This document shows, one piece after another, positions 16,777 to 58,670 of a stretch of DNA of 64,000 nucleotides. Where the stretch lies: assembly GCA_015680685.1 (NCBI GenBank), contig MNCI01001419.1, forward strand, positions 177,492-241,491, given 5' to 3'. This stretch comes from Gnetum montanum (taxonomy: Eukaryota; Plantae; Gnetophyta). The notes beneath the pieces are model-generated. The model searched no databases and was not told the origin of the DNA. It saw only the letters and a program-made list of their open reading frames with translations. The position numbers and the translations under genes are program-made. Numbering within the stretch: position 1 is the first letter of the stretch; every line of letters starts with the position of its first letter.

Positions 16777-19590
16777 ATGGCACCAAAAGGAAAGCACATG
16801 CAAGAAGTAGGACCATTCCAACTAAGGGAGAAGTGACCTAGAATGGGAAGAGTCTAAGAACATCCCCATGAAGAACCACTTGCAACCCATGTCATAGGTC
16901 CTTTTTAGGAAGAGGTAGAAGTGGAATCTATCAAACAGATTCTAGAATCAATAGCAGTAGCAACAAAACACTCCCATTAGGACAATGCACTAACACAACC
17001 TGCAAATCTTGAAGTAACCTTAATAGAGGCTTACTTGAATCAAATGAAATCAAGTGAGGTCCAAAAATCAATGCCTCAAGAGTTAAACTTTGGCCTTTCT
17101 TGAAGCATGCACCAAATGAAGTATAGTACTAGTTGAAGACCTCTCCCATATGGCTAATCATCACTTCCATTAGGAAGTGGTACATGGGAGAGATGTTCCT
17201 ATTTTGGAACAACAAGAAACCCAGATAAACAGTGAAAATCAAACACATCTCAATGTCCTACTCAGTGTAGGCCATTGCTGTAGTGCATGGGTTACTTGGA
17301 ATAGGCATAACCTTTATTGAGATCCCAATGTAGGTGGATCCTAGTATCAAGAAAGAATAGACACAATGGTACTATGGTGTCAACCATAAGGAGTTTGGTG
17401 AGCTCATATCGGTAGAGAAAATTTATTACAAGATTGTTATCCTTTCACCTCAATCCCATGGTGAGGCCAAGAAAAATCACCACCTTCTCTACCTGAGCAT
17501 GAAATAATTCAAGTAGGAGATTGCCAATCAACCTTCTACAACTAATCTATCTAGAGATAGAGAAGTAGTTTAAGGAAAATGAACATGGAAGGAAGGCACT
17601 CCCCTTTCCATGCCTCTTTAGGAAACTATATCAAAGGGAAGAGATATTTCATTATTCCAACGACATAGTGAGAATTGTTCTAGCCACCAATTGGGTGGAA
17701 ATTATGAAGGATAAGACACCTAGAATCATTATTCAAGAAGAGGAGCAATGATCACCACCTCCACCTACCACTTAGACAACAATGCCAAACATCATTATGA
17801 TAATCCAATGGTTATGCGAATACTAGGAATGGCTCTTCAGTGAACAAGAGTAACAAGTAGGCATGAGTGAAGGCAACCCATCCATGTATAGACTAGCAAT
17901 GAGTCACCTCAATGAGTTGGCCCTAAAATTTAGTTTGATGGATGGAGGTGGATTCATTTTCTTGACCCAAAGAACACAACTACATGTGAGGTCAAATCCT
18001 AGCACTAGAGAGGTCATAGTATCTCTTGCAAAATAATAGTCACTCTTAGAAATTCCTAAGAACAACATGACCTTCTTGGTGTGCTTAGAGAAGGGTGAGG
18101 GAATAATTGTATTAGTGATGTAGCACCAAGGATAAGAGATCATAGTAGAAGTGGTTGCTAATCATATTGTCGAGACTCTCACTGCACCTATGACATCTAC
18201 ATTAGTTATCACTACACTCAAAGATGTGCAGACATCCATAGGAACCATAAGTGGCAGAATAAACATAACATAGCATGAAGAACTACTAGATCAACTAGTA
18301 GTAACCGAGCAACCACTTCTAGATGTCTTTAACCTTCTAGACAACATTACTATAATCCAGTCAAAGATGCTAGATGTAAGGGGCAAGAATATATTATTAA
18401 AAGGGAAACTTAAAATGCCTAGGGAGTGAAATAATTGATTGGCTACAAAAGTTCCTAAATGAAGAGCCAAATAACTAATCTCACATTTCTCAACCTACCA
18501 TTAACAAGAGATGAAGCTATGTAACAACTTCACACTAAGCTTAAAAGGGTTGAGGTTGTAATGGAGATGGTGGTGTTCTATCAATCCTTGGTACATACCA
18601 CTTAGCACAAGATTTAGAAGGCCTTGGATTAGACCCACCAAGAGAATGTTCAGTTAACTATCGAGAACCATCTCCTACAAAATGTTGATGAACACAAGCA
18701 ACAATTAACTAACTTCATCCATCAATAATAAGAGTAATTGGCCAAAGCAAACACAGAACTAAGGATATTGATAGCAAAGAATAGGAATCTCTCCATGGAG
18801 AAGGTATGCACTCTTCATAAAAAAATTACAATCAAGGTAGCCTCTTGGAAATCTAAAGCTCTCAAATTTGAGAAATCAAAGATCATTACAAAGAATAGGT
18901 CAACCTAGAGAAGGAGGTAAATGAAAAATACATCTAGTTGGTGAAGGTGAAAGTAAATGAAGCCCTCCAACAACTCTAGCAAGATAGAGAAGTTTGAAAA
19001 CCCATCATTGATGGAATAGATGCCTACAATAAGGTAGTGATTTTCACAAAGGGGTTGAAGATCGAGGAGATGACAAAATATATAGAGCTGGCCAATCTCT
19101 ATTATATAAACCTAGTCATGTTAACTACTAGATGACTATGATTAGAGCTCCAGAAGTATGTGGATAGGTTGTACTTGTTGTATGAGGACAATCTCGAGCA
19201 CCACAAGCACATCAAGGATAAGCTTGTGATGACTAATGCTAAACTTGAAGTTCTCAAGGCATGACTCATTAATCAATGATCAACTGCTAAGAGCCTAGCA
19301 AAAAGGATGAATGACTACCAAGATCTACAAAATGCAATCAAAATGTTCAACATTAAATGCAAATAGTTTGCTGCTTGGTTTGTGAACCTAGAGTAGATGT
19401 TTCCAATAATGCCATATTTGTGAAATGTCACCATTCTAGCCCACATTTATGATGCCATGTGGACTATGAATGATCCCTGGTGTAAGGAGGAGAAGATGAA
19501 GGCATTGCTAAATGACTTTCACCTTCCACCAAAGGTTACAGCTATAGCAGGATAGCCACAACCACCTTAGCTACACACATGTTCCTAAAG
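16777..19590 (+). pseudogene. Athila accessory ('env-like') ORF: N-terminal PF20167-like domain plus C-terminal coiled coil
   Basis: ttgtag|ATG GCA CCA AAA (acceptor-like site then MAPK); motifs WYMGEMFLFW..TVKIKHISMSYSV.AIAVVHGL and LPINLLQLIYLEI..ALPFPCLFRKL; E/K/Q-rich tail homologous to 33150-34865. Confidence 0.7.
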
Positions 19591-19887
19591 CTGGTGAGGG
19601 TCCTTCAAAACCATAGGAGCCATCACTGCTTGGGATTGTTTGATTTTCTCCACAACCTTCATGCCATCAAAGAAAGTGTTGCCCAATTGTTTTTGTGTAG
19701 TACTGTCATGGTGTTTAATTTTGCATCATGAACACTACAATTTTGTAATGTATTGATATGTATACTTAAGGCACTCATTTTTATCAAGTTATTTTATTTT
19801 GTTTTGTTAAGAGTTAGTCAATAATCCCATACCTTTTTAATTTTATAAAAGAACTAAAGGAAAATTTTTCATTTAGTCATGGAGGTA

Positions 19888-20836
19888 TAATAAGTATCAA
19901 GGTGTCATGTCGATGAGCCCTCATTGATGTGGCCTAAGTAACAAGCCCCCATCAATGAGGCCCCATTTACATGATGTTGTCCCATCGATGGGGTTGGGTC
20001 ATCATAACATTCGCTACATTGATGAAGCCCCATTAAAGTATCCTTAGAGCAAAAACTATAAATACAAGATCCCAGGCATGTTTATGGGCATTCAAGTCAT
20101 AGTGATAGTAGAGCTCTTACATGTTTTCTGTTTGAAAGTTAGAATATTTTTCCTAAGTGCTTGTAGCAAGAATCATTGAGTATATGGATCTTTATTCAAG
20201 CATTGTTATACCTGAGCATGATAGTATGTACAAAAATAAAGATGAGATTCTTGATAAACCTTGCAGCATTCTAGATAGTTTAGATATTTATTCATGTATT
20301 TAATGCTTTTAGTTATTTATTTAGTATTTTTTAGTAGTTAAGCTAATTAAGAGAGATGAGCTAAATAGATTAAATACATAAGTACAACTACTTTGAGCAT
20401 AACACATATTTGGTTTGTAATCCCAATAGCATTCTTGCTTGGTGCACCTAGTAGTATAGCACTTGGTAACCTAGTAGTGGATACATGGGTTTAGGACATG
20501 TAGGGAAAATGAGACTAGATGCTTATGTTAAAACTAGCTAGAGACTAATTAGTTAGTTAAATTAAATTAGTCATTATATTAGTTCATCTCTCTCTCTTTA
20601 AGCATTAAAACCATAAAACATAAAATGATAAAAATAATATGCCTTGATTACACTTAACCATACCTTTGTACTTCAAAAGTGTAACTGGGAAGATAATGAA
20701 TGACCTTAGGATAAAGTTCATTTCCTAGAAGACTAGTGCACCAAAAACTAGAGAGTGCATGAATTCAACTAGATGGTAAATGAGTGCTCTATGATTCATA
20801 TGGTTGGGAATAAGGGTACCTCTTCATCACTCATCA
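19888..20836 (+). repeat. Athila 3' LTR
   Basis: Starts TAATAAGTATC (deaminated TGATGAGTGTC), ends CACTCATCA; colinear with the 5' LTR. Confidence 0.92.
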
Positions 20837-21939
20837 CTTGTCAAAAATCTATCCTTTGGAGGAAGATGAAATCCCAACTATAGCCAATCTCTTACATAAG
20901 TAAGGAAGGTTCCTCCCAAGATTTATAATGGCTCATGCAAAGGGCTAAAGGAGCTTCTTTAGACATGAACTCATCTAAGCACTGGTGGATTTTGATAATC
21001 TCAACTGTGGAGATTATTCCTTCTTTTATTTCAGAGGTATGGTATTGGGTCCTACTTCTATTGCATGGGAAGTACTCCTTTTCTCAACATACTCACTGAG
21101 ACTTATCTTGTCTTTAATCAAAGGAAACTCTAGAATAGGTACATCCTTCTAGTAAATCAACAAATTGATGAGGTAGGGATGACCAAGAATTCTCTCTTTG
21201 GAATAGAGGTTTAAAATTTCTTGATGAAGTGTGTGTCCTAGATCCAATGATAAACCTAAAAGAAGATAATAAAGTACAAAATCCTTGGGTGGTAGTAAAA
21301 TTTTGTAGCTACCTTCTTTCATCATGATGTTATACAGAACAACAAGTGACAAGCTGGAGGCATCATGAGTCATCTACTTCTCTCAATATGATCCATATCA
21401 AAGGACATATCTCTACCAAATAAGACATCACAGAGTTCATAATGTCCTATAGGCATTATACAATTTGCATAAATATCATGTATAGCATCAATGATTACTA
21501 GGAAGACATCAATACTAGAGATACCCTTAATTACATGAACTTAGGGAGAGACATCAAAAATAATTCCCCCAACCATTGATGTGAATTCCCCAACAATAGC
21601 ATTAGAAACAAAAATATTACAATAAAATTCTCTAATTAGTATCTTAGAAACTAGAAAATTCATAGTAATGAAAGTGTTCCAATTCAGAAACTTAAAATAG
21701 TCTAGCAAGGCTTGTTGTCTATGAGCCAGAAAAGCAAGAGAATGTTTAGAAATGATGCTACTTCTTTGATTTTCCTCAAACCTATGATGTTCACTCATGC
21801 TATGAAATTGAGGCATGCACAAGGGTGACATACTATTGATACTCCCTTTTGAATGATTTTTGGGTAATAGTCTGGACATTCCTATCTTCTTATGGGCCAT
21901 CTCTAACAAAATTGCTACAAATAGTGGAGTCCTAGTCAT
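20837..21939 (-). pseudogene. Sirevirus accessory ('env-like') ORF with PF20167-like domain; continues at ~7100-7640 beyond the Athila insertion
   Basis: FKFLNWNTFI..KILIREFYCNI..FTSMVGGIIFDVSP and LDLGHTLHQEI..LGHPYLINLL. Confidence 0.75.
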
Positions 21940-22549
21940 CTCTATGAGGTAGATCTAAAGGAATATGACAAAAAATGAGGATTTTATCTCTTATAGTGGT
22001 AAAAAATTAAGGGCTTTGAGAAAAAAAAAAGAGATCTTTTACGCATTTGAAATACATAGTAGATGTCTTTCTCACATAGTAGATGTCTTTTCTATGGTAT
22101 ACAGAAAATTAGACAAATGTCTTTGTTTACACGAAGATGTCTTTAGAGAGACATCTTTTATTTTTGAAAGAATTCTTTTATCAAAATCAGGATGGAGCTT
22201 GGGAAAGGTTGTCAATGGGTTATAGTCTTAATGAAAGCTAAAAAAACAAAATAAAACTTACCCCTACTTATCTATTATACTATCAAAAAGTGGTGGAGTT
22301 TAGAGATCTAGAGAATGAGTTTCCTCTTTTGAGGATTCTCCTCTCAACCAAACTTCTCCAATGTCCAAAGTATGACCTTCTCTTATGAATTTGTTGGTGA
22401 GGATGTCATGATTTCTCTATTCCTATTATTTAACTCTCCATTCATTTTTTATTTTTTTGATGTATTGAGTTGACATCTACTTTCCTTTGTGATCCTACAC
22501 AAAATCCTTTCTCAGTGAACTTTGATAAAACTAAGGAGTCCTATGATAT

Positions 22550-24166
22550 GGCCAATGATAATATTTAAGAGTACAATCCCATTGTTTAGGTCTTAACATG
22601 TGAAAATAATAGCACCTCATTCTCTTATGGAAGTATGAGTAATTAGAATATCAAACCTTTCAAGACCTTTTTGAGATATGGGTGCATCCTCTGATTTTTA
22701 TGTGCTAGTTGTTTCTTTTGGTGGATCATTTGATTGGGATGTGTTTAGAGGTGATGAATATTCTTAAGTGTAGCATCCTAGAATGCTCTTATCATGTGGA
22801 CTTCTTCCTTGTCCTAGGACCATTTGAAGGGATTTATTTTCCTTGTCCAATGTCTCATTTATTAATTTAATGTTTGCAACTTCTACTTTAGCCTATTTTA
22901 AAGATGAGGTTAGCTATTCATTCTTAACCCTTAGATCTAGGAGTTGTTTAGAAAGATCAAAAATATTCAAATTCAACAATGATATTTCCTGATCTTTAGA
23001 CTTAACTTTTTTATTTAACTTAGTGCAAAGACTTTGAAATGACAAAAGCTCATTGCATAACAAATCAAACCTTTCATCATCAGCTAAGATCATCATCTAA
23101 TGAATCAACATCATCATTAGTGAGGACCATGCAAATAAGATGAGAACTTTTTACATCATCCTCAATTTCTTCCTCACTCTACTCCCCATCATCCTAACTT
23201 ATATAGAAGTTGGTCTTTTTTGCTTCTTCAATGGACTTGTTCTTGGTTTGGAACCTGAAATTGCTGGAATATTTGGATGTAATATGGTCTCTTCCTCCAC
23301 AAATCCAACATTCTACAGAAGAGAAATCTAAACTAAAATTCAAAAACTTCTTATCTCTTTCTTTACCTTTGAATAAATTGAATCTTTGTTTATTTTTTTC
23401 CTTTATTCCTTCTTATTATCAATCATCATAGCCTCATAGTGAGAAAGACAATCTCATATTCACCACCCTCATCATGCTCATTAATCTCCATCTCCTTGGA
23501 GGTAGTCTTCAAGGTAATGGATCTTTCTTAGATAACTCCTTCACTAATGAGATTCATCTCATAAGAGATGAAAGCACTTTCAAGTTCTTCAAATTTTAGG
23601 TTTGAGAAATATTTGATTTCTTCCATTGTCATGACCTTAGGTCTAAACTCTAGTTGAATATTTTTGATCATTTTAATGATCACATTACTTTTAGGCAAGT
23701 TTTTACTAGCACCTCTAATGGCCACAAGCATATCATTGGCTTTAGAGAATTAATCTTTTTTCTTTTTATCTTATCTTATTTTAAGCTTATTATATTTACT
23801 TTACAAGACCAACAATTTTTATTGCTTAACAATAGAGGTACCTTCAAACATAGCTTCTAACATTTGTCAAATTTCTTTGGCTCTTTTACATCCTACTACT
23901 CTACTAAATTGAGATTTGTTCAAAGCATAATATAAACAATTTTTTTCTCTAGAATTAAACATGAACATATCTTTTTCCTCTTGTATCCATTTGTTTTGAG
24001 GCTTGATGATGTTAGTGGAGCTATCAATAGGTGGAGCGTACCCTTCAAGGATTGACTCCCACATTTCAAACTCCATGGATTTGAAGAATGCTTTCATTCT
24101 AGCTTTTCAATAAGCAAATATGAATCTATTGAACATGGGTGCCTTTGTGTAAGATCTCCGATCCAT
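22550..24166 (-). pseudogene. Sirevirus-type Copia gag
   Basis: MDRRSYTKAPMFNRFIFAY(W)KARMKAFF..FSRVVGCKRAKEI; EFRPKVMTMEE (UBN2-like); decayed CCHC knuckles ECWICGGRDH (~23300) and ~22600. Confidence 0.88.
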
Positions 24167-24206
24167 TGTTTACTCTTGAAGGTAATGATGACAAAGAAGA
24201 GTACCA

Positions 24207-24219
24207 GGCCATGATATCA
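24207..24219 (-). other. Decayed tRNA-iMet primer-binding site
   Basis: Minus strand TGATATCATGGCC resembles TGGTATCAGAGCC, a few bases inside the LTR end. Confidence 0.7.
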
Positions 24220-24223
24220 CTTA

Positions 24224-25288
24224 TGAATTGTTGAACTTAGAAGGGGGGTAAGTGGATGAATAAGTTTTTCAAATTGAAATTATTTGGATAAATCATACAC
24301 ATTGAATTTGATGTGGTTTCCCAACTTGGGTAGTTCACAATCAAAGGATATATTTCAAGCACACCTCTAAACTTTTTTGCTCTCAAATTTGTTTGAAGGG
24401 TACCACATCTTATACAAGATCTAAGCTTTGCTTCAGAGTGTTATAATGCTACACCAACCACTCAACCCCACAAGATCTTGACAAGCTTCAAATGTGGTTT
24501 CTAGGCCTCCACAACCTTTATAATCTTGATCTCTACCCTAGAGTGTTGTTGCACTACACAATCACTTAATTTCATAGCATTACAATAAGCTCAAGCAAGA
24601 TGACTTCCTGGAAGAAGCACGTCAACCTCATAGGATAACAAGAGAGAACAATAATTACAAGGAATGAATGCAACTCAGTTTGCTGATCCTTGCACTTTGA
24701 AGTATAGCATACTTTATAATGGACAAATGATAATACAATGAGGAGAAAAAATTATTGACAATTGATTACAAAATGATAGTACAAATGCTTGCACATTTCC
24801 CAATGAGAATGATGTCTCCTTATAGTCATCATGTTTTCAAATCCATTTTGGAACTCATGAAATAGAGAGATAATATCATGAAAGACATATTCTTCATGTT
24901 TGAGGTGTCTTTCTATTTTTCCCTTGGTTCTAGAAGGTCATTTTTGTCTAGTGAAATACACCTTATTGAATCTGGCCTGCATTCTATGAAAAAGTCTTTA
25001 TATGGGGAAAGATAGATTTGTTTAATGAAATACATCTACCATTTTTTAGAGACATCTTCTTTTGTATTGTCTTCAATTCTTATAAGACATCTACTATTTC
25101 TTGGAGACATCTTTCTTCACTTTTCTTTGCATGATGAATTCTTCATTCCTTATTCACAACCTTGATTTTTTTGCAAACCTTCTTGTCTCAATCCAAGTTC
25201 TTTTTCTACAAGCATAATAATCAAACATACATACAAATAATTTTGTCTTCCATTTTTCTTAATGTTTTCACATATCAAAAGGTCTGCA
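24224..25288 (-). repeat. 5' LTR of the Sirevirus-like element
   Basis: Begins TGCAGACCTTTTG on the minus strand and ends CAATTCA; homologous to 5670-6666 and 28200-29362. Confidence 0.88.
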
Positions 25289-26769: not shown

Positions 26770-26895
26770 TTTATTTTTATTTATTATTACTATTATTATT
26801 ATTATTATTATTTTAATTATAATTATTATTTTTCATATATATATATATATTTAAATTTAAATTTTTTTATTTTGTTTAATATATACATATGTATA
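26770..26895. repeat. (TAT)n / (TA)n microsatellite tract
   Basis: Runs of TTA/TAT and TA read directly. Confidence 0.85.
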
Positions 26896-30559: not shown

Positions 30560-33500
30560 CTTCTAGTAACGCAGAATGAGTACGACTTAATCACAAGCAT
30601 TTTAGTGTGACTACTTGGTAACCCAGTAGTGTACCTACGCCATGTGCTTGGTAATCCCAGTTGTAGTCATGCATAAGGTCCAAGATGTGTATGGATGATT
30701 AAGGAACAGATGCTCATTACACTTAGGCTAGTTTAGATTCTCTCTCATCCTCTCTTCTAGCTTAGTTGATATTATTTCCCATCATACCTAGGAGTAGCAT
30801 TAGTGTAGGAACACATCATACACGTCACTCTCAACTAAACCATAAGTGACAAAGCTAATAATTGTCTAGGTGGGAAGACAGCGAACAGTGATCTACGAGT
30901 AACTATCTAGATACCACAACTAGTCCATCTGTGGAGTTCGACTGGATCATGCATGAAGTTCTTGTATTCATATGGTTGAGTGTAGGGGTACCTCATCACT
31001 CATCATTGGCACCGTTGCTAGGGATGAAGCTAGTTATCTAGATTAGTTATATCATACAAGGTCACTGTATAGGAATTAACGATATATCTTTTAGGAAGAA
31101 ATAATTACAAAAAGTCACATACAAATTCACACACAATTTAACAATCATGCCTCTCCTACAAGACTACAATAATGCCACATCTAGTGAGGAAATTCATTGG
31201 AGAACCAATGAATTATATGACAATGAAGGTTGGAGTATGCAATTTGAGGTGGGGGTTTCTTATAAACATAAACAAAGGTAGCATCGTCCCAACGCACGAA
31301 AGCGTAACTTCCTCGATGAAGATGAACCCCTACTGGCCACTACAAGCCTAACAAAAATACAAGAGGTTGTTCGAATCCCCATAGGCATCGTAAAGAGAGC
31401 CTCCTACCAAGGCTTGATTTAAACAAATTTTCCAATTTATCAGGAGGCTATGAATTAGATTTGCAACAACATTTACAAGGCTTCTACAATGCCTATGCAT
31501 GGAACAACATTGATAATGGTTGACAAAAAATCAAGCTCTTTCCTATGACACTCGTTGGCCAAGAAAAAGTATGGTATAGATCGTTAAAACCAAATTCAAT
31601 ACAACGTTGGCCAACAATGGTAAAACTCCTTAACGAAAGATATCAAACTTACGCAAGAGTGTCAGCCTTGAGGAAACAAATCCAAAAGTGGAAAGAAGCA
31701 CAGCATGAACCCTTGGACATGGCCTTAGAAAGATATTATGCACTATTAAACAACTGTCCAGGCCATGAGTTCTTTGAGGAAAGGCTAATGTACCATATCA
31801 TTGATGGGCTTCGTAATGAGACAAGAGAGACCCTACGGATGTATGCCCAAGATCAACTATATGAACTATGAACCCATCAATTCCAAGAGCTTATTAAGTG
31901 GGTACAAGAGAAGAAGGAGAAATGGCTATATGGGAGAGCGTTAAAAAACATCAACGGGACCAAAATCTTAACTTAACAAAGGTCCTTAATCACAAAAAGG
32001 AGAAATCAACCTATCTCAAGAAGGAAGAACCATCTTTGCTAGTACAACAATCATTAGAGGAAATCAAGGCAAGATCAATAAGATGCTGGAATGAATGCAT
32101 AAAAAGTGTGGGGAATATATCAATATTATTGGAGATAGAGTTTTCACAACCTGAGAAGTAGGAAAAAATATCATTAGACAATCAGAAAAAAGGGATGAGG
32201 AAAATAAGATCTCAAATGCCAATCATACCTATGAATGCAACATTTTCTATACAATCATCCCAAGGGCCAATGCCAAATCTTGTTACATTTATATGAGCTT
32301 TGGGGAAGCACGTTACACCTAGAGTTTGTACAAAGATACTATGTTCGATCACAGGGGCAACAATCCCAGTCATGGGGGAAGCCATCCCTAAACTGGGGAC
32401 ATCCTTCCTATCATCCGAATCTAAATGCTTATCTAGTTTAACATCCTATTTCCCCAACTAGGTCAACATACTCTATCTCAACGCATTATTATTCTACTCA
32501 ATACTATCAACCCATGTCCTCAACACAACCACCGCCTTGTGTTCCTTACACTTCTGCTAAATTTCAACATTCTCATCCTTTTCCTCCTTCTACATCGCCA
32601 CCAACTATTCCTGAAGTGTCTGCACCATAGCAACAACCCACGAATGTTACTTATGCTACTATTGCAAACAACAGTGAGAGACCTCCTCAACATCAAAGGT
32701 GTACATTCTTTAGACATGACTGTAGGAAGGGACAACATAGTTCCAAGGCCACTGCATTCTCCAACTTAGCACAAGTCCAACACTATGGTGCATCCTTCTC
32801 CTTGAACCCAACACCTCATGTCACCTCATTAGGACCACCAATTAACACTCCCACAACCATACAGCCCAATGAATACAACCACGGAGGATGACATCCCAAT
32901 CCTTGCATGCCATCTTATGATCTCAAGTATCATGGTCAACTCTTCATATGCCAAACTGCTAAAGTCACCAACTACAAGAAAAATCACTAGTGAGACACTG
33001 GGGCTAGAACAAGAAAAATAACAGATGGTAGGGCCAACTACAACTCAAATTCCAAGACCCAGCCAACTTCCAAACACGAGACCTAGTCAACAAAAAGAAG
33101 TAGGACCTAGCATGAGCTAGTAGGATCAACCACTGCCACCATCGCAAGATTACAAACTATCGATGAGCCATCTCGGGGCCATCTCTAAGATGGTCAATTA
33201 CGAAAGTCGTGATGATGAAAATCTCTTCCGTGTCATCAACGATGCTGTATAGCCTACGGTTTCTATGGATCGCATGCAGGGTGAAGTGTCCATTCAGATA
33301 GGAGGAGGAGAGAGTGCTTGGTCACAACAGATTTCAGGGAATGCTGCGTCCTTTCAGGTGCAGTTGGAAACTGGTGAAGGGGCCACAGTGATGGCTACGT
33401 AGCATTAGGATGTAGCAAGAGTCATAGAAGTGGTTGTAGATCACATTAAAGAATCATTCAATGTATCTATTTTTTCACTGGTAGATCTTATAGGAGCATG

Positions 33501-38852: not shown

Positions 38853-40399
38853 CCTGCATCCTCGTCAGTACATCCAGAAGCAATTCCCGACTGATCCACG
38901 CTGGATGCAGCTCTTTGGAAGGAAATTCTCCCGAAAAAAATCAAGATGTTCGGGTGGCTGATCCTCCACCACACCCTCCCCATCCGGACATTATTGCATA
39001 TTAGGGGCATGGCAATCAGTACCCATTGCCCCTTGTCCAATCACTATACTGAGACGCTGCAGCACTTCATACATGAGTGCCACGTTACCAGACAATTCTG
39101 GCATACGGCCGGTCTCCATCCCATTAATGTTTTTGGGAACTCATCGACGCTTACTACACTGTGGATTCTGTGGAAGGCCAGAAATGAATGCATCTTTAAA
39201 GGCGTGGCCTGCCCTCCCCCGACTGTGTTATCTGGCAGGTTCAGGAAATTCTGGCATGAAATTACTGCCGCGATGGACCGGCATACCCGCCTCGAACCTC
39301 CCGTGACAGCTATTCAACGTCTGCTGCGATGGACCAGCATAACCCTCTCGAACCTCCCATGACAACTATTCAACGTCACCCAGAGCTTTGGCAATGGGCC
39401 TCTCGCATGAGGTGGACTAAAATTTTGCCCAGAATTGCCGCTGACCCCGAGCTTGACACCCGCCCCTTTTACACAAATTGGCACGAGGAGACCACCGTGT
39501 TTAGAGGGCAGCAGATTCATATTACGGCGGCATCGGTTGCCGCCGTGATTGGGGTGTCTTTCAGCAATGCTCACATTCCCCTGGGTGGGTTCGCATGCGG
39601 CTACTCTCGATTTCTTCCAGGGCCCCATCCCGAAGATGGCCAGTGGACATATCAAGGGGACGGCCCTCTCGTCCAGTGGAAGGCGGCGGCGAAGTTGGTT
39701 GAACGTTTTTTCATCCATTCTGGGTCACACCACAAGCTAAATGGGGTGCACTTTAAATTCATTCAATGTATGCGCAACGACACCCCCATCAACCTCCCTT
39801 TGTTTCTCTAGGAGTCTCTGCGGAGGCGCCACCCTAACAGACATCCCAGGCTGATTCGTGCCCTGTGGTTGGCTAGCACTCCCTCCCTGCCAGCTCAACC
39901 TTCGGATCTTCAGGAGTCGCGAAAGCGAAAATGCCAGGGTTCCGACGAGGGGACCATGCTCCAGCACCCTGATGTTGGCCAAAATCAGAACCTGCTGAGA
40001 CTGCACCCTGAGAAGGACCCTTCGACAAGAAATGATACCGTCGCCAGCAACACGGGGGCAGCTTCCGAACCCCCCAGCATAGTCACCGATCCAGACGCTG
40101 CTTTGGATTGAGGGCGTCCTCAAGGATCATATGATGGGCATCGCTCAGACGATCGAGGAGAACCGGCGCCACCCCTCGGTGGGGCCTGGACAGCCGGAGT
40201 TTCTCGCTTTTGCTCCGGGGGCGGTGGTTGCCTGCCTTCCTGCAGGGATGCCTGTGGCGGGGGGAGGTTTGGCTCCTCGGGGGGTCCTTTTTGTCTTGGT
40301 TGGTGTGGGGCCAGCGGTTCTGGTCCGCACTACGCGCCTATGTAGCTCCTTTGTTTTTTTTGGAATATAATTTTTCTCTCCACCTTTTCAGAAAAAAAA
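38853..40399 (+). mobile_element. 5'-truncated L1-type LINE (zf-RVT end of ORF2 plus an extra 3' coding region)
   Basis: 16-bp TSD AATAATGGAGCAGGTT (38837-38852, 40400-40415), poly(A) tail, and zf-RVT motifs WKEILPKKIKMFGWLILH..CPLS..ETLQHFIHEC..FW and LWILWKARNECIF. Confidence 0.93.
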
Positions 40400-40540
40400 A
40401 ATAATGGAGCAGGTTTATGATATTTAGCTTTCATTTGTCTAGATATTTATCTTTCATTTGTACATGTAGCAAAAATGGAGCAGGTTTATGATATTTATCT
40501 TTCATTTATACATGTAGCAATAATGGAGTAGGCTTATGAT
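40400..40540 (+). repeat. ~48-bp minisatellite that was the LINE target (first unit at ~38806-38852)
   Basis: GATATTTATCTTTCATTTGTACATGTAGCAATAATGGAGCAGGTTTAT recurs on both sides of the LINE. Confidence 0.8.
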
Positions 40541-41022
40541 AGGACATAGTGGTCCAAACATTCATCTCTCATTCATCTCTCATTTGTATCATTCATGGAA
40601 TACCCTTGTGATACTACACCTACCTCTCTACCATATTGAAGGGTTGTGTTAAAGGCCTATGTTCGATTTTTTTTCTTTAAATATCTAAATATGAAAATTT
40701 TAATTCTTTCAATTTATGGTAAAAATTTTAATTCCAAGTATTTTAAATTTGAACCCTCATGGATGCTATGCTATATGGAATTACTATTCCAACTAAATTT
40801 TTTTGGACCAAGCAATTCAATTCTTCTTTGCAATTTTATTCGCGTGCCATGTCCTTGAGTAATAGTGGAAGGTGTTAGAAAAATAACATTTACCCTATAA
40901 TACTTTCATAGAAATTTGTTTATAATTCAGCATTATCTAATGGAATCAAACCTATGAATTAAAGCTTATAAATCAAAAGTCTTAATTATTATTATTTTTT
41001 TAAAGATACAATTTAGATGTGC

Positions 41023-42479: not shown

Positions 42480-45310
42480 ATCTAGAAGGCTCGATGCAAG
42501 TTTGAATGCATGCTATTGATTGCATTAGGCCTTTTGGAAGTGATTGTAGGCACGTTGGTGGGCACATCACCTTGTAGTTTGTGTAAAAATCCTACTAGTA
42601 CTATGTCCACAGACTGGAAGTAGTGGTTTCCAAGTAACTGGTCATCATGTGAGGTGACTTTCAAGCATATTGTAAGTGCACTACTACTAGCATTTCCTCG
42701 TAGTCCATTGAAAATCTGGGCTGGAAGACTTCCTATCATTTGGAAGCCTCAATGCAAGTGTGAATGTGAACTTTTGGTTGCATTAGGACATCTAGAAGCA
42801 ATTGTTGGTAAGCTGCTAGATGCATCCCCTCACAATCTATGTAAAAATCCTACTAGAAGTGTGTTTGCCAAGTAGTAGCAGCGGTTTCCAAGTAACTGGT
42901 GATCAACAAAAGTTGGGTGTCTTTTAGGCTAACTACGAGTGGACTACTATTAGCAGACCCTTGTAGTGCATTTTAAATATATGCTATAAGTCTTCCAATT
43001 ATGCGAAAGCCTCTATGCAAGTGTGAATACGCACTACCAATTGTAGTAAGACTTTCAGATGAGACTATGAGGTTGCTGCTCAACATACACCCTCGCAGTG
43101 CATGTGAATATCCCACTAGAAGTGCATCTGTAGACAAGAAGTAGTGGTTTCCAAGTAACTAGTAATCAATGGAAGTAGTGACTTTCAGGGCCCACTACGT
43201 GGTGATTGTTGGATACAACCCCCCACACTGAGTGTTAATATCTCATCAAAAGCACCTACATAGATAGAAATAAGTGGTTTCCAAGTAATTGGTGATCAAC
43301 AAAAGCAAGGTGACTTCCAAAGCCTATTACAAGTATGCTACTCAACATAATCCCTCATAATGTGTTGTAAATCTGAGCTGGAAGTTTTTTAATCATCCAA
43401 AAGCCTCCACACAAGTGTGAATGTGTGTTTTTGGTTGTAGCAGAACTTCTAAAAGTTGTTACGAGGTTGATTGTTGGATACACCCCTTCACTCTATGTGT
43501 AAAAATCCCACTAGTAGTGCATCCATATATAGGAAGTAGAGGTTTCTACGTAACTAGTGATCAATGAAAGCTAGGTGACTTTTGAGACCTATTGTGAGCA
43601 TGTGACATGATGCACCCCCTCGCATTATGTTGTAAATCCAAGCCAAAATTATTTTGATCACTTGGAAGCCTCAATGCAAGGGTGAATGTGCACTATCAAT
43701 TGCAATAGGATTTCTAGAAGCGACTATGAGGTTGTTGCAGGATGCATCCCCTCATACTATGTGTAAATATCCCACCAAAAGCATGTTTATAGAAGGGAAG
43801 CAGTGGTTTCCAAGTAAATTTTAATCAATAGAAGCTGGGTGACTTCTAGGGCCTATTGTGAGCATGTGACATGATGCATTCCCTCGCATTCCACTGTAAA
43901 TCTAAGCTAGAAGTCTTCTAATCACCTGAAAACCTCCATGCAAGTGTGAATGCATGCTACTGATAGTAGTAGGACTTCCAAAAGTGACTGCGACGATGCT
44001 GTTGGATGCACCCCCTCATAGTATGTGTAAATATCCCACCAAAAGTACATTCATTGACTAGAAGTAGTGGTTTCCAAGTAAATGGCGATTAATAGGAGCT
44101 AGTTTTCTCTTGGAACTATTGCGAGTTGATTGTTGGATGCACCCCCTTGTAGTGCATTGTAAATATGACCTACAAGTCTTTTGATCACCTAGAAGCCTTC
44201 ATGCAAGTGTGAATGCACCCTATCAATTATAGTAGGACTTTTGAAAGTGACTACGAGGTTGCTACTGAATGCACCCACTTGCACTATGTCTAAATATTGG
44301 GGCTTACCACAAGTTGACTATTGGATGCACTGATAAAAAGTAATGGTCTCCAATTAAATGGTGATCAATGGAAGCTAGGTTGGGGCTTACTACAAGTTGA
44401 TTGCTGGATGCACCCCCTCGTAGTTTGTTGTAAATCTAAGTTAGAAGTTTTCTGATCATCTAAAGGCCTCCATGCATGTGTGAATGCATGTTACTAGTTG
44501 CAGTAGAAATTTTGAAAGTGACTACGAGGTTGCTACTAGATGCATCCCCTTGCACTATGTGTAAATATCCCATCGAAAGCATATCCATAGATAGGAAGTA
44601 GTGGTTTCTAAGTAACTAGTGATTAATGGAAGCTAGGTAACTTTCGAGGCCTACTGTGAGTTGACTATTGGATGCACCCCCTTGCAATGCATTGTAAATC
44701 CATGCTGGAAGTCTTCTAATCATCTAGAAACCTCCATACAAGTATGAATGCATGCTACGGGTTGCAGTAGGACTTCTAGAAGTAATTGCAAGGATGCTAC
44801 TAGGTTCACTCCCTTACATTGTGTGTAAATGTCCCATCGAAAGTATGTCTATTGATTGGAAGTAGTGGTTTGTAAGTAAATGATGATTAATGAAAGTTGG
44901 CTAACTCCTAGAACTACTATGAGTTGGCTGCTAGATGCACCCCCTCGCAATGCATTATAAATCCAAGTTAGAAATCTTATACTTAGCTAGAAGCCTCCAT
45001 GCAAGTGTGAATGCACACTACTAGTTGCAGTAGGACTTCTAGAAGGGATTGCGATGTTGCTACTAGATGCACCCCCTCGTACCATGTGTAAATATCCCAT
45101 CAGAAGTGCATCCATAGGGTGGAAGCAATGGTTTCCAAGTAATTGACAATCAATGGAAGAAGGGTGACTTCCAAAGCCTATTGTGAGTACGTTGCTTGAT
45201 GCATCCACTCATACTATGTGCAAATATCCCACTGGAAGTGCATCTACAGATTGGAAGCAATGATTTTCAAGTGATTGGTGATTCATAGAAGTAAGGTGAG
45301 TTTCGAAAGC
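42480..45310. repeat. Tandem array, ~264-bp unit, ~10-11 copies
   Basis: CCTCCATGCAAGTGTGAATG anchors at ~42489, 42747, 43010, 43404, 43669, 43933, 44196, 44467, 44731, 44994; AGTGGTTTCCAAGTAA in each unit. Confidence 0.95.
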
Positions 45311-45944: not shown

Positions 45945-48560
45945 AGTCCTACCTAATGTCCATGTATATACATGAATCAATTGTCATTATTCATATGGCC
46001 CAAATGTTATTGCACGGGTGGCATCTAGGGAAGGAAGAAAAAGAAACAAGATTGGTAGAAAGACTAGTTACTAATGTAATTTCATCATATGTATTATGGT
46101 GGCGCTGAGCATGTTGCATGCATTATATATAAAGAAATGAATCATGTTGGCACATTAGGAGCTTATTGTCATGGCTTGCTTGGTCCTATGTTGGATAGAA
46201 GAGATGCTTAGTCAATACATATTTCCCTTGAGATATGTCAAAGATAGTGTCATTATGGAACCAAGGATTTCTAGTATATCTAATTTATGAGAGATATATT
46301 AAGGATCTATTCAATGAATGGCAAGAATTCAAGTTGTCTTGGTAGAGGGACATGTTTCTTCTTAAAAAGGACATTTATAATATTTGCAAAGATGTTACAT
46401 TGGAATACAAAAAAAGTGAGCATAATAAAATTAGCACAAGGTTATGGTACCAAAGCACCACATATTTCTTCTTTTGCTATCAAGAGGAGAACATTGAATA
46501 GTCTATCCCAACAATCATCAAGTTGCAATCACCATGGATGCTGAAAAAGATGATAGGTCTATTGCAAAACAACATAATTTCAATGGATTCAACCTTCAAC
46601 ACCAACAAATATGAAGTAAATATTTGGGGTATTTTAAAGAAACCATGTATCAAGAATATTTTTTGTTGAAATTAGCTCATTTTTCTAATAAAAATGGTAT
46701 TTTTATAAACAACTCCATCTTCACATAGTCATGGCTTTTGATTTATACTACAATGGATTGCCTATAGGATGGGTGATCTCCTCGAGGGTTATAGAGAGAA
46801 ATGTCACAACTTGGCTATATGAATTGATGAGGAGATGCAAGTCCTGAGAGTTATGATGAATAGTAAATGCATTCATGCTAGATGATTTAAAAGCTAAAAT
46901 GAATGCTATAAGGTAATAGTTATAAACAATGAAATTTAGTTTCTTATTTTAAAGCTTAGCTCAAGACATGGAGATATCAGACTTGAATGTGAAACATTAT
47001 GTGAAATAGTCAGGTTTGTATTTGGTTGTTGTATCTTTCTATGCATTTGGCATGTATGGAGGGCATGGAGGAAGAACTTGGCAACAAAGGTTAGAGATTC
47101 TATAATGAGAAAGGCTATGACATCACATCTAAACTTTGTTATGAATAAACAAAAAAAATCATACGGATGTAGTTGTGGAAATTAACAAGTTTTTCATTGA
47201 GCATTAATAGAATGTTAACTTTATTAGTTACCTAAAGAGCGAATGGATAAATGGATATAAATTTCATAAGTACATATACATTGTAGCTTAATATAATTAG
47301 ATTGCATTATTCTTTTCTTTTTTTCTTTTTTACTTTTTTTTTTGTTGAGGGCTCAAAGGTTCATTTCTTAGGGATGTGGGAAAAAGCCTATCATGATATT
47401 CCTCATGCTCAACAACACACAAACAATGTTGTGGTGTCCTATCATGGATTTTTAAAAGGAAAATTCTTGAGAGATATCAAAAATAGGAAATATTGTTGCA
47501 TTGATTAGCTTATATGGACTTTGATAAAGGTACAATCATGTTACTAAAATAATGCCAGACTTAAAGCTATAGGATATCTAATAAATATAAAGGATAAATA
47601 AATCAATAAGAAGTCATGGGAAAAGGCAATTGAAATCTATGATGATGATTGCAAATAAGTACTGGATAAAGAAGATGAATATCTTGTGCATAGTCAAAAT
47701 TCTTTGAAATAGGATACTTGGTACAAGGTATCGAAGGTGTTCTTCTTTAGTATTTTTTGTGAGTGTAGATGGTTTAGCATCAGTCATTTTTACAACCATT
47801 CAATGAAAGTTATGATATTAGTCAAAGGATATATGAGTGCATATAAGTTCTTCTTTAGATATGAGTATTTTGATTCAAGACCTCCTTTTGAGCTAAACTC
47901 GTTTATACCTCATGAATTTTCAAGCTATGAAGAGGCATCACATTCAGAGATGACACTAGAGATAATCAAATCAAACTCTAGGAAATCAAATATCAAAGAG
48001 GTATAGAGTGCAACAATATCTTCCCATGAGTAGAATAAAAGAGGTGTTCATAAATTATATGAGCAATTCGAAGCATTCGAGGATAATGTAGATGAAAGCT
48101 TGATAGTAAAAATAGCAAAAATAAAAAAAGGCATTCAAAAGTTTTACAAAGAATATTCCCAAAGATAAAGAGAGTGTTCTTGATCTTGAAAAATATGTTG
48201 AGCAAATTCCGTGTAAGTTCTTGATCTCAATAAATGAAAATGATTTGTTAAGTATCAAAGGAGTGTCAAGTTGGGACAACCCTACTAAAAATTGACACAA
48301 AAATCTGTCTAATCCAAAATGTTGTAGAAAAATGTTTATGGAAGGTAGAGACACATTCTAGCTTCACTAACCTATATTTGAATATGTAATTTATGATTAA
48401 TAATTGAAAGAATTAACATTTGTTATTTTTAACTTGTAGAATGCAATGAAGATAGCCAAATTTGTAATCGAAACTCATCTCCCTTATAATCAAATATGTA
48501 GTAGTTGAATGCGCAGGTTGCATGACAGAGAGAAGTTTATGTCATTAGCTGAATTTTGGA
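45945..48560 (+). pseudogene. Spliced Mutator-family DDE transposase with SWIM zinc finger
   Basis: IIYKEMNHVGTLGAYCHG; ISMDSTFNTNKYE|gt; NGLPIGWVISS; AFMLDD; IFLCIWHVWRAWRKNL (CxxH); HTNNVVVSYHGFLK (E>V); CECRW..H SWIM; intron-like AT-rich gaps with GT donors; many stops. Confidence 0.9.
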
Positions 48561-53110: not shown

Positions 53111-53416
53111 ATGAACAATGTTATGATTATTGTCACAATCGATAAGCTCTTGCTTGACTATTGGACATGTTTGTTTGTCATTTGGTGCCTTATTTCTGTA
53201 TAGAACATTATGGTTTTTCATAATTAAAGTTGAAGAGTTTGACCATTTTTGCATTGTGTATTATTCATTTTTTCAAAAAAAATGATTCCAAAGATGTCAA
53301 AACAATGAAATAACCTTATTGTAAGTAAAATATTGATTGCATTCTTCATTTCTATAGTTGAGAAATAATTCCCCATTTAAGCTAGTAATATTTGGTCTCT
53401 CCATTTTGTCAAAATA

Positions 53417-54610
53417 TGAAATTTAACATACTATGAGGGGATGCGGTCCACATACCCTTGTAGTAAATAATCTTTATTGAAACATGCAGGTCACATTCTC
53501 ATGCACTAGTAAATTTTTGATTTTGTTTGACGATGTGATCAGCTACGAGGTGCATTGTAGACAAATCCTGCAGATCATATCTCCTTGCACTAATAAAACT
53601 ACTTTTTGGTATGTGCTATGAAGGAATGCAAGTCGTAGTTTGGCAATGCAGAAAATTTTTTCAACTAGTGCCTCTCCAAACATGCGGTGCACGGTTGCTC
53701 ATACTCATAAAAACATGTTTGTGTTCTAAAGTAAGTGCACATGTGAGCTACATACTATTTGCATGTGCCGAGTGCGAGTAAGGTGCGTAACGTATGTACT
53801 CACAAGTCAGCAAGAAACCTTGACTTTTTCTTAAAATAAGAAAATTAACATACTGCGAGGGTATGCGATTCACATACACTTGTAGTAAATAGTATCTATT
53901 AAGACATGCAGGTTGCATCCTTATGCACTAGTAAATTCTTGGTTTTTTTCAACGATGCAATCACTTGTGAGACACACTGTAGATGAATCCTGCAGATTTC
54001 ATCTCCTCACACTAATAAAATTAGTTTTTGGTATGTACTATGAAGGAATGCAAGTTACATATTTGCAACATAGAAATTTTTTTCAATTACTGCCTCTCTA
54101 AACATGTGGCTCACAATTACTTGCACTGATAAAAACATGTTTTTGTTTTGAACTACATGCACATGCGAGTAGGGTGTGTAACATATGTACTTGCAGGTGA
54201 GCAAGAAACCTTGACTTTAGCTTAAAATAATAAAATTAACATATTGCAAGGGCATGCAGTTTGCATACCGTTGAGACATGTAAGTCTCATCCTCATGCAC
54301 TCGTAAATTCCTAGTTCTATTCGGCAATGTGATCACTTGTGAGATGCACTATAGATGAATTCTACATATCACATCTCGCTACACTGATAAAATTAGGTTT
54401 TGGTATGTATTTTGAAGAAATGTGAATCACATTTTTGCAACACATAAGTTTATTTCAATTGGTGCCTCTCCAAACATGCGACTTGTAATTATTACATTGA
54501 TAAAAACATGTTTTTGTCATGTACTGTGTGCACATGTGAGCTGCATATTATTCACATGAACTGAGTGCGAGTAAGGTGTGTAACGTATGTACTCATAGGT
54601 GAGTAAGAAA
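53417..54610. repeat. Tandem array of three ~390-425-bp units
   Basis: AAATTAACATACTGCGAGGG, TTTTTGGTATGT, ATAAAAACATGTTT and GCAAGAAACCTTGACTTT recur; units start at ~53417, 53841 and 54232. Confidence 0.93.
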
Positions 54611-54960
54611 AGTAATACGACAAAATTATGAGAAGCATATTTTATGTAGAGATTATGACAAATTGCTTGTTCGATGGAAACAATATTAGGAACACATATT
54701 GAACCTTGAAAATTATAGATTCCCTTTTATATTTCAGAAAATAATAATCACAATACGAAACAAATGAACATCATATATATTTCAAATTGGTAACCATGAT
54801 ATAAATACATTGTTCTCACATGAACAAAAAATTTTCCTTTCATTAAAGATGGCGAAGAGGCATTTACATCATAGATGTTTTTTACATTAGAAACAAGATA
54901 CAGTCCATGCTCACTACAATCCTCGCAGACAAGATGCTACACACAAATTTTTTACCATGG

Positions 54961-57436
54961 TTAGTCAAGCACTAAATGACTAAGAATATCTTGTATCATG
55001 GTATTTTGATACATAGAAACAAAATTGTTGCTAAATTTTATCTCTTTTCTAAATACTAAATGGTGCATGAACAATATCGTGTGCATGCCATAATCATATC
55101 CATTTTCTTGAGTAGGTATGCCTTGCACAGCCGTTGTACTCCACTTTGATGATGACTTCTTTTGCTTTGCCTTCACCTTAGTTGTGCTTTCAGCAATTGA
55201 AGAATCACCTTTGAATAAAAAATCAAGAAATGTTGACATTAACTTTTGAATAGTAGCTACATGTTGGGAAGAAGGTAATGAATTGTAAACACACATTTTA
55301 CTAGTACATGTGTCTAAGACCACGAGCACCTAATGACCGCCAATATTGAATGGGGTGCAAAATAATTACAGTCATGATTCAAAAAATTCATCCTAATATA
55401 TTTTAGATTTCACATATTCAGTAAATTCCTTCTTTGTCATGAACACATCAACCTTTTCTTCACGTGATGTGTCACTTTCAACATTGATCACATGTCTTTT
55501 TGTGGGCTTCTTTGCTTTATGTCCCAACAGGTTTTTTTTGCTATGTTGCATCTTACTCTCTAGGGACTTTGCAAATGCTTGAAACATAATATTAAATACA
55601 AAATATTTTTTAGATGCTTCACAATCAACATTAGCTTTCTAAAGTTGCTTAAGGTACATGATGTACACATCAATGACATCATCATCAAGCCATTGTTTTC
55701 ATCCAAGTTGGTATACAAACCTGAAAGACATTCCTATGGAAATGAATGGGGGAAGCAGTGACATAATAAGGACTTCACTATTTAAATTGCTTGTGACAAG
55801 CAATTACATTACTCTATTAACTATCACACATGATTAACCAATTAGGATGATGAAGTTAGCAGGCTTCACTATTTGAACTGTACCAGATGGTAGATCAATT
55901 GGGCTATTCAAGTCTACATCACCTACATGTGAACATTCATAAGATGGACGTCAACATACATAAACAAGTGATCCAAACAAGTCTACTTATATGTTTCTTC
56001 ATTTGGATTATTTTATTGAAATACTTCTTTGATGTCTCCTTTAACTGAATCAAATAATCTTCTGGCAGCTTTCGTTGTTGCCATTTTAGTCATTTATGTT
56101 CAACACATGTACAATACAAAGACCATTGAAATTTATAAAAGATATGAACAATGTATTAAAACTACAAGGTTTTATAACATGGCACAAACCTTTGATAGTA
56201 TGAACCCCATTAGCACAAATGTCCTTACTATAAAAAATATCAACTATAGCATTTTTTAATGACATAATTTTTTATTCAGTGTGAATATTGGTTTCCCCAT
56301 GTTTTCAATCTTAGCAAGCAACTTCTAGTTAAATCTATTTTGTTCAGCCACATAACTCTCATTTTTGACCTTCAATTGCACATGTTCTTTTATCAAACAT
56401 GATCTATATGATTTTAGCTCCTCTAGAGCACTCCAAACTGTTGAATTGCTTTGAGAATAATTATTTAAAGTCTCCATCACATGTTCCATCTTATCATCAA
56501 TGGATTGGTAAGAGAATTTTTCATGTTGGCAACTATTATCGATAGCTTAGGTTTAAAGTTCTTTCAAAAAATAGGTCTCACCCTTGTTGGACACTAATGT
56601 AATCTTCAATATACTTATAGGATCTAGGAGGACTATTCCATTCATTTGGATAGCCATAAAATGAATATTTTTTAGCAATTATTTTGTCACTATAATGGGA
56701 AAGCTAAGGGACTCTTTCACATCATGGAGCTGCCATAACCTTGCCCACCTCTTCATCTCAAACATGATAGTCATTGGGATATCAAATGGAACACTTTCAT
56801 TATTTTCCAATGCCCACATGAGTAATATTGCATTATTGAAAATCTTTGCTTTCATTTCTTTCACTAGAAATAAAGACCATTGCATAAATTTGGAAAGCAA
56901 CAAAAGCTTTGGATAATCATTTGGATTATCATCTTTCATCTTAAATTTTTGGGCATACTTGTATAACATCTGTAATGTCATGAACATTGAAGGTGAAATT
57001 TTGTCTTTGAATGGTAGGCTGTAGAGTACTTTTCGCAATAAACACACTATCAGTTAACCATTCATAAAAGCTGTAAACAATATTTTTGTCATAACTTCCA
57101 TCCATTGTCATCCATTGAAAAATTTCAATTTTCTTTAATTTTCAAGAAAGAATAGACATTTTTGGCAAGTCTAATTGTTTGTAGATTATATTCATAGAAA
57201 ATGCCAATAGCTACAATTCAATCAAATAAATAAAATGTTATCATAACATAAAGTAGAGTACTTGAATTAAGACATATATACTATCAATATTGGTTCATAT
57301 AAAACACAAGTACTCACATAGAAGATCCCTTTTGCTAATCCCCATCATTCTAACAAGCTCCATGTTCAAACACAACTTCAACAATATCCCTCAATGACAA
57401 AGACAATGTAATTAGAATAGCCTTCTTTGGTAATCC
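54961..57436 (-). pseudogene. Multi-exon Ulp1/SUMO-type (C48) protease gene with an N-terminal PF20167/DUF1985-like domain
   Basis: QWLDDDVIDVYIMYL; TPFNIGGH(W>*)VLVVLD..VY(D>N)SL; IPTQENGYD(C>Y)GM. N-terminal part: FQWMTMDGSYDKNIVYSFYEW..TIQRQNFTFNVHDITDVIQV..FDIPMTIMFEMKR..LSFPIIVTK. That both parts form one gene is inferred from strand and proximity. Confidence 0.82.
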
Positions 57437-58636: not shown

Positions 58637-58670
58637 TTAGAAGCGAAGAAGTAAAGCAGACATTGTAAAA

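Follow-up and report, generated by a model that had tools for sequence, protein, structure and literature searches.

PF20167-like accessory domains in decayed transposable elements of Gnetum montanum, including one fused to the ORF2 of a LINE

To our knowledge, the role of most extra ORFs in plant retrotransposons is still an open question, and we know of only one transposon protein, VANC21, with a proven anti-silencing function. The PF20167 domain of Athila-type extra ORFs is related to PF03078 (ATHILA ORF-1). In plant L1 LINEs, what ORF2 carries in addition is a zf-RVT tail and, in some lineages, an RNase H. VANC proteins bind DNA motifs and remove methylation (PMC5735166), and PF20167 itself is carried by the 3' ORF of the sunflower Athila 14 element (PMC11728184). 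PMD (PF10536) is an accessory domain found in Gypsy elements, in MULEs and in the host genes MAIN and MAIL1, for which anti-silencing has been suggested (PMC5418596), and its PMD-C form is reported to be structurally like the DUF1985 of VANC (bioRxiv 10.1101/2024.09.27.615353).

The window analysed here is the whole stretch of 64,000 nucleotides from Gnetum montanum (contig MNCI01001419.1, positions 177,492 to 241,491). The original prediction placed one accessory domain in four transposon classes (Gypsy, Copia, LINE and Mutator), at the sites called here S1, S2, S3 and S4, and all four of the peptides it quoted are present there as stop-to-stop pieces. Taken as a whole, it is reasonably probable that the window holds decayed copies of PF20167, an accessory domain of plant transposons whose Pfam name is 'putative plant transposon protein', with the status of each site as set out below and with a proposed role in DNA binding.

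PF20167 in the window and the host element of S2

The reference profile was built from Pfam-verified PF20167 members, taken from plant DNA within metagenomes, which match the Pfam model with E-values of 1e-23 to 1e-44. Alignments by hhalign were set against 300 control pieces and shuffles, with a control maximum of 20. When the window was scanned exhaustively in six frames with hhalign, the best three scores (41.8, 38.5 and 36.3) fell at S2 and S3, the first two of them at S2, and the next was 23.1. The features at S2 are as follows.

5675–25284, minus strand: LTR-bounded element without pol, host of S2 (LTR-like repeats, gag-like region)
21152–21954, minus strand: S2, decayed PF20167 (Transposase_32) domain (Pfam, local profile, hhalign)

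The domain is spread over three or four frames, in pieces at 21544–21954, 21373–21540, 21366–21446 and 21152–21373. The last of these matches Pfam PF20167 over profile positions 98–170 (E 7.3e-6), with a score of 26.4 bits that lies below the Pfam cut-off of 45 bits because the piece is a fragment. The two halves of S2 are the top two matches when the window is searched by hmmsearch with the local profile (E 1.1e-4 and 8.5e-4), and their hhalign scores of 34.8 and 36.9 are reached by none of the 300 control pieces. Single PF20167 members used in tblastn match S2, S3 weakly, and no other locus in the window. By these sequence comparisons, S2 certainly belongs to PF20167.

S2 sits in an old LTR element in which a gag-like region is present and pol is absent. 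The LTR-like repeats (24305–25284 and 5675–6662) are 79.4% identical, and the element has been split by the insertion of a Gypsy element at 7641–20837. The gag-like region at 24106–23197, in which a CCHC gag and a coiled coil are seen by eye, looks Copia-like by the same inspection; its pieces had no match in Pfam, the gap from gag to S2 is too small for a pol, and no tRNA-Met primer site was found in the element. The original label of 'Sirevirus' for this host is therefore not upheld.

The LINE and its ORF2 extension

The third site lies in a LINE, and a second tail of the same lineage is found further along the window.

38853–40401, plus strand: 5'-truncated L1-type LINE (zf-RVT, poly(A), target-site duplication)
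39270–39381, plus strand: tandem duplication of about 56 bp, copies 88% alike
39383–40108, plus strand: S3, PF20167-like C-terminal extension of the LINE ORF2 (hhalign, Atlas, shuffles)
59915–60590, plus strand: second LINE tail, same lineage, diverged and 5'-truncated (tblastx)

The first copy lacks a reverse transcriptase because it is 5' truncated. What remains of ORF2 includes a piece at 38895–39359 that contains zf-RVT (PF13966, E 3e-13, starting at about 38910), and the extension is followed on its 3' side by an A-run at 40392–40401. The element is bounded by a target-site duplication of 15–16 bp, AATAATGGAGCAGGTT, read directly from the sequence at 38837–38852 and 40400–40415, and it is richer in GC (46%) than the flanking DNA (about 33%). 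The tandem duplication lies just before S3, and as its length of 56 cannot be divided by 3 its second copy shifts the frame; without that copy the ORF2 frame continues into S3. In other organisms, contig depth drops at this duplication. The S3 frame itself runs from 39260 to 39808, is interrupted by an in-frame TAG at 39809–39811, and resumes from 39812 to 40108 on the plus strand.

With the PF20167 profile, S3 gives hhalign scores of 32–36 (E 1–3e-4) over 73 columns at profile positions 7–88, against a noise maximum of 23, and not one of the 300 control pieces or of 90 shuffles scores as high as its S3a piece (z 7.4 for the shuffles). Its score against a full-length profile of the Gypsy-type accessory ORF is 27.2. 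A search with a protein language model (Atlas) names the same family, PF20167 accounting for 14 of the 30 nearest clusters, with scores of 0.92–0.93, and ATHILA for 2 of the 30. Protein homologue searches in which the queries were S3a, S2a and a trimmed form of the S3 domain found no homologue. The sole match of S3a in an exhaustive phmmer search, a bacterial repeat protein, was rejected as spurious.

The family to which this LINE belongs is of high copy number in related organisms. In two other organisms the bins along the LINE are covered by contigs 90–99% alike in 30 of 30 and 29 of 30 cases, and the extension is found in hundreds of contigs at about the depth of the zf-RVT part. The second tail begins within block 2 of the domain, inside an intron of a glycosyltransferase-like gene. 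It gives colinear tblastx matches to the first (E 7e-6 and 0.25) in which protein motifs are kept, and it has a similar, A-rich 3' end, the DNA being too diverged for blastn. Thus, the extension domain belongs to the LINE, as originally proposed, and S3 is certainly a PF20167-like member of the PF20167 family fused at the C-terminus of ORF2 in an L1-type LINE lineage.

As an alternative, the copies might be separate captures of host-gene fragments of the PF20167 or PMD type, made independently by each transposon class and useless to the element. A MULE-borne PMD-C is nested within a host-gene clade, which suggests capture (PMC5418596), and every copy in the window is decayed. However, many contigs from outside the window carry long, open PF20167 ORFs 3' of an intact-looking Gypsy pol. 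The LINE extension, too, is open for about 280 codons apart from one stop, and this lone stop is missing from most of the contigs that cover it in two related organisms, where position 39810, inside the TAG, is a different letter. It is also conserved as protein between the two diverged LINE copies. We consider such captures quite unlikely.

S1, S4 and the four-class claim

The remaining two sites give much lower scores, and their surroundings are listed here.

7641–20837, plus strand: Ty3/Gypsy element, host of S1 (LTR pair, pol remnant)
17133–17748, plus strand: S1, resemblance in motifs to the C-terminal half of PF20167 (low-threshold alignment, colinear)
46502–47182, plus strand: putative MULE/FAR1-type transposase remnant (by eye: DSTFNTNKY-type motif, CxC SWIM-like end)
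54964–55329, minus strand: Ulp1 protease domain downstream of S4 and on the same strand (Peptidase_C48 PF02902, E 2e-7, profile 106–212)
56682–57141, minus strand: S4, candidate PF20167-superfamily domain heading an Ulp1-type gene (hhalign)

The host of S1 is confirmed as Ty3/Gypsy, and it is at this level that the earlier name 'Athila' is supported. Its LTRs (7641–8520 and 19890–20837) are 79.5% identical and flanked by CTTGA and CTTGT, taken as a target-site duplication, a pol remnant lies at 12002–14749, and S1 falls after the end of the integrase and before the 3' LTR. Another stretch of the window, 2553–5110, is 73% alike to the pol region and carries rve (PF00665, E 1.4e-7). S1 itself is broken by six in-frame stops and one frameshift. 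Its hhalign scores of 10–15 are noise: of 300 controls 31 reach them, as do 7 of the 60 shuffles, and the opposite strand of the region scores equally high. Homology of S1 to PF20167, as judged from these alignments, is possible but unproven.

S4 consists of two pieces, 57141–56944 and 57053–56682 on the minus strand, with one frameshift near 56950; an intron at this point was considered and rejected in favour of the one-base frameshift. S4b scored 20.2 and then 22.1 in hhalign over profile positions 136–199, which none of 300 controls and none of 90 shuffles reached (z 5.0), and an Atlas search with it gave no usable match. S4a scored 14.5 and then 17.4 over positions 21–39, which was reached by 11 of 300 controls and 2 of 70 shuffles (z 2.3). 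The two are in the correct order and register, yet noise in the exhaustive scan reaches scores as high as theirs. S4 is probably, on borderline profile scores, a PF20167 domain that heads an Ulp1-type accessory gene. Such genes are of a kind carried by MULEs, and tandem arrays are present near this one. The proposed MULE host gains from the Ulp1 domain on the same strand, but the transposase-like remnant lies on the opposite strand at a distance of about 9.5 kb, its pieces had no match in Pfam, and no terminal inverted repeats were found around the MULE-like region. Membership of S4 in a MULE is no more than plausible.

The shared pattern that was first read across all four sites stands for S2 and S3, is borderline for S4 and is at noise level for S1. 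It could be argued that the peptides other than S2 fit a loose two-block pattern by accident, the sequence around them being AT-rich and decayed. The four peptides, which had been thought alike, show no pairwise similarity above chance: with each site piece as a phmmer query against all 2869 six-frame pieces from the window, there was no cross-site match above noise. In a five-block chain test with a frameshift-tolerant PSSM, a test of low power, S2 alone exceeds 40 simulated windows, and the Pfam PF20167 search reported none of the pieces of S1, S3 and S4. Reading through the breaks with X did not raise local scores, and a MAFFT alignment of the site fragments was not meaningful. However, S3 lies far beyond all controls and is independently assigned to PF20167 by the language-model search, and S4 has the shuffle result of S4b and the correct register of S4a on its side. 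Chance as the source of S1, S3 and S4 together is very unlikely.

It is also very improbable that the domain is native to LTR elements only and was placed beside LINE and MULE parts by insertions or read-through copying: the window is heavily nested, neighbouring DNA can travel with the 3' end of a LINE, and S4 is distant from the transposase-like remnant and has no bounding terminal repeats, but S4 runs on into the Ulp1 domain. In the LINE, the domain keeps to the ORF2 frame, has zf-RVT before it and the poly(A) after it, and is enclosed by the target-site duplication; its motifs are retained in the second copy, and its depth in other organisms is about that of zf-RVT.

Possible role and relation to known systems

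A role for the domain is suggested by structure prediction. The PF20167 model used has a pLDDT of 68 (four other models are near 50, and a second structure model, at 42, was too poor for use). When it was compared by VIA-align with 48,161 chains, rank 1 was 9lnk_A, with 160 residues aligned against 44–75 in the other rows. The 9lnk structure is VANC21 with its target DNA, and the VANC21 of VANDAL21 is an anti-silencing protein with DUF1985 and DUF287 that binds DNA in a sequence-specific manner. Foldseek against the PDB gave no match, and sequence searches of the PDB did not match VANC21. By HMMER, the PF20167 proteins, their profile, S3 and S4 show no link to VANC21, DUF1985, PMD or ATHILA; the verified PF20167 proteins do not match PMD even at E-values up to 10, and the Pfam models of PMD (PF10536), ATHILA (PF03078) and DUF1985 match none of the pieces searched, so that the kinship with these families expected in the original prediction has no counterpart at the level of sequence. 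The new parts of this picture are the LINE fusion and the structural link between PF20167 and VANC21, the latter a weak one so far and dependent on a predicted model.

If the predicted fold is correct, PF20167 may be a DNA-binding module folded as in the VANC21–DNA complex. A transposon would use it to recognise its own or its target DNA and thereby either escape silencing or direct its integration, and different transposon classes would have acquired it separately. In the broadest version, PF20167, the DNA-binding region of VANC and perhaps PMD would form a single DNA-binding fold, recruited by every major class of plant transposon (as a 3' ORF in both LTR superfamilies, an in-frame ORF2 fusion in an L1 LINE lineage and an Ulp1-linked gene in MULEs) for family-specific self-recognition against silencing or for integration. 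This is a tentative idea and, as it stands, an unlikely one. The LINE ORF2 fusion, the pol layouts of Gypsy and Copia elements and the structural match to VANC21 make the question of the extra ORFs testable; if they hold, they would suggest that the transposon classes share one tool for DNA recognition.

Among known systems, Athila-type elements provide one comparison, since S2 and S3 match PF20167 and since two loci in the DNA of other plants (L103 and L104), in which a Gypsy pol is followed by a PF20167 ORF, have the published layout (PMC11728184). A further locus from other plants' DNA (L042) has a Copia pol followed by a PF20167-like ORF. A position 3' of both Gypsy and Copia pol is thus seen at these outside loci; S1 as a member and the Sirevirus label for the host of S2 are not supported. 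In contrast to the Athila-type layout, the domain in the window occurs in an LTR element that lacks pol and as an in-frame fusion at the end of a LINE ORF2, and the window's own Gypsy copy, S1, is at noise level against PF20167.

A resemblance to VANDAL elements is seen in two respects: the predicted PF20167 model matches VANC21, over the 160 residues, better than any other solved structure compared, and S4 stands first in an accessory gene that has tandem arrays close by. PMD is similar in being one accessory domain shared by LTR retrotransposons, DNA transposons and host genes; it differs in that none of the pieces matches it and no LINE host for it is described in the literature searched. 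Likewise, a full-text literature search for PF20167 found no LINE in the two papers naming the family. What the element described here has in common with plant L1 LINEs is a zf-RVT at the end of an L1-type ORF2, along with a poly(A) and a target-site duplication; it differs in that zf-RVT is followed by a PF20167-like domain of about 240–280 codons.

Family membership of the four peptides

The window is AT-rich plant DNA, crowded with old nested transposons. The four peptides (S1 to S4) that had been quoted as carriers of one domain in Gypsy, Copia/Sirevirus, LINE and Mutator hosts are all real conceptual translations, found where they had been placed:

17133-17748, plus strand: S1, broken six times by in-frame stops and once by a frameshift
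21954-21152, minus strand: S2, distributed over three to four frames
39260-39808 and 39812-40108, plus strand: S3, in a single frame with one TAG in between
57141-56944 and 57053-56682, minus strand: S4, with a one-base frameshift near 56950

Every copy in the window is dead, and the broken ORFs were searched piecewise, or with X read-through inside scripts, using neither consensus nor frame repair. An intron in S4 was considered and rejected, the sequence reading as the one-base frameshift. The mutual similarity claimed in the original prediction was not seen by phmmer, which gave no cross-site match above noise when each piece was compared with all 2869 six-frame pieces of the window.

The motif LVREFYAN is typical of PF20167 (the Pfam 'putative plant transposon protein', Transposase_32) and was used as a lead, not as evidence: members outside the window were found by scanning metagenome contigs with a degenerate DNA pattern encoding it. 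In about 60 of 120 loci the DNA is plant-like and the ORFs belong to a single family, and Pfam confirms PF20167 in representatives (E 1e-23 to 1e-44). The resulting reference profile, of 15 non-redundant domain segments, is narrow because every member was selected via this one motif.

On comparison with this profile, we assign S2 and S3 to the PF20167 family. In an hmmsearch of the window the two halves of S2 were the top matches (E 1.1e-4 and 8.5e-4), and hhalign scored the S2 pieces at 34.8 (S2a) and 36.9 (S2c) and the S3 piece S3a at 34.3 (73 columns, profile 7-88), against a maximum of 20.0 among 300 random pieces. A repeat comparison had the same outcome (S3a, E 2.9e-4). An exhaustive six-frame scan with stops as X gave S2 the two highest scores (41.8 and 38.5), followed by S3 (36.3) and then, at 23.1, by the best of the remaining alignments, and none of 90 composition-matched shuffles reached the S3a score (z 7.4). 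Pfam reported PF20167 solely for the S2 piece 21152-21373 (E 7.3e-6, 26.4 bits, profile 98-170). Independently, a protein-language-model Atlas placed PF20167 clusters at the top for S3 (14 of 30 neighbours, scores 0.92-0.93), with two ATHILA ORF-1 clusters also among the 30. A frameshift-tolerant block-chain test was weak, with S2 alone exceeding the null, and database searches with S2 and S3 pieces found no relatives. The proposed PF20167 identity thus stands for S2 and S3 but not for S1, which aligns colinearly with the profile at low threshold yet is noise in every scored test, the opposite strand of its region scoring equally high.

Host elements

S1 does lie in a Gypsy element, as had been proposed: it sits past the end of integrase and ahead of the 3' LTR in an element at 7641-20837, whose LTRs are 79.5% identical and whose flanks are CTTGA and CTTGT. 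This element is itself an insertion within the S2 host, a minus-strand element with bounding repeats (24305-25284 and 5675-6662) that are 79.4% identical and with a gag-like, CCHC-bearing region. The label 'Sirevirus' is unsupported for this host: pol is absent between the gag-like region and S2. The nesting has three levels; the pol-less element (5675-25284) has the Gypsy pol region repeated next to it (2553-5110 versus 12002-14551, 73% alike). A Retrotrans_gag domain at 31524-31868 (plus strand, E 2.4e-12) marks a further Gypsy-type element, and coiled-coil-like ORF pieces follow it up to about 34.6 kb.

The assignment of S3 to a LINE is confirmed by zf-RVT, a terminal A-run and a target-site duplication of 15-16 bp on both sides:

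38853-40401, plus strand: 5'-truncated L1-type LINE, with zf-RVT (E 3e-13) and terminal A-run

The LINE is higher in GC than its flanks. zf-RVT and S3 differ in frame only through a tandemly duplicated segment of about 56 bp, which makes the S3 domain a C-terminal extension of ORF2. In two other organisms, contigs 90-99% alike span the LINE from end to end, with similar depth over the extension and zf-RVT and a dip at the duplication. Of those that reach position 39810, most have another letter in the middle of the TAG, so the S3 stop appears to be private to this copy or to close relatives. RNA reads of related copies also turned up, in small number. At the insertion site lies a short array whose units are 48 bp long: one precedes the LINE (38802-38852) and two follow it (40436-40541). 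A second, diverged LINE tail (about 59915-60590), also 5'-truncated, retains two protein motifs and the 3' end, its DNA being no longer alignable. It lies in an intron between UDP-glycosyltransferase-like exons (58641-59231 and 60805-61263, plus strand), which were identified by eye through a motif resembling the PSPG box.

At two loci in the retrieved plant contigs, Ty3/Gypsy pol is followed after about 1.3 kb by a PF20167 ORF in the same orientation; at one further locus a PF20167-like ORF follows Ty1/Copia pol. PF20167 also occurs in a 3' ORF of a sunflower Athila element (PMC11728184). In another plant's DNA, solitary PF20167 fragments (L020, 2010-2354; L046, 2174-2518) lie within a few kb of ORFs resembling LRR receptor kinases.

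S4 and its surroundings

S4 is probably a PF20167-type domain, judging from its alignment. Its pieces S4a and S4b fall on the profile in correct order and register, with hhalign scores of 14.5 and 20.2, rising to 17.4 and 22.1 once S2 and S3 are included in the profile, still within exhaustive-scan noise; shuffle tests gave z 2.3 and 5.0, and the Atlas was silent. S4 continues on the same strand into a Ulp1 protease domain (E 2e-7). This domain (55329-54964, minus strand) has a tyrosine (DYG) where family members carry the catalytic cysteine of the DCG motif, which may reflect decay or a pseudo-protease.

A MULE host for S4 is plausible. A MULE-type transposase remnant, recognised by eye only and silent in Pfam, lies 9.5 kb away, and a search for terminal repeats around the MULE-like region found none. 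Tandem arrays (43365-45142 and 53404-54610) flank the MULE-like region, one repeating every 264 bp or so (6.7 copies that are 73% alike), the second from self-comparison; they are reminiscent of VANC target arrays.

Structure and possible function

That S2 and S3 belong to the family, that one is fused to a LINE and how the domain is arranged in LTR elements are shown; the function is a proposal. A PF20167 domain that had been verified was modelled with AlphaFold (pLDDT 68, pTM 0.64), and a Foldseek search with the model found no solved relative. VIA-align ranked first the DNA-bound structure (9lnk_A) of VANC21, the anti-silencing protein of VANDAL21; this match, named in advance, is a strong lead, not proof, and the link is so far weak. 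The domain may bind DNA; an element could then recognise sequences of its own or of its target, and such recognition might serve a VANC-like escape from silencing or guide integration.

The plant mobile domain (PMD) is known from MULEs and Gypsy elements as well as from genes of the host (PMC5418596), and PMD-C is reported to resemble DUF1985 of VANC (bioRxiv 10.1101/2024.09.27.615353). VANC proteins bind short motifs within tandem repeats and strip methylation (PMC5735166).
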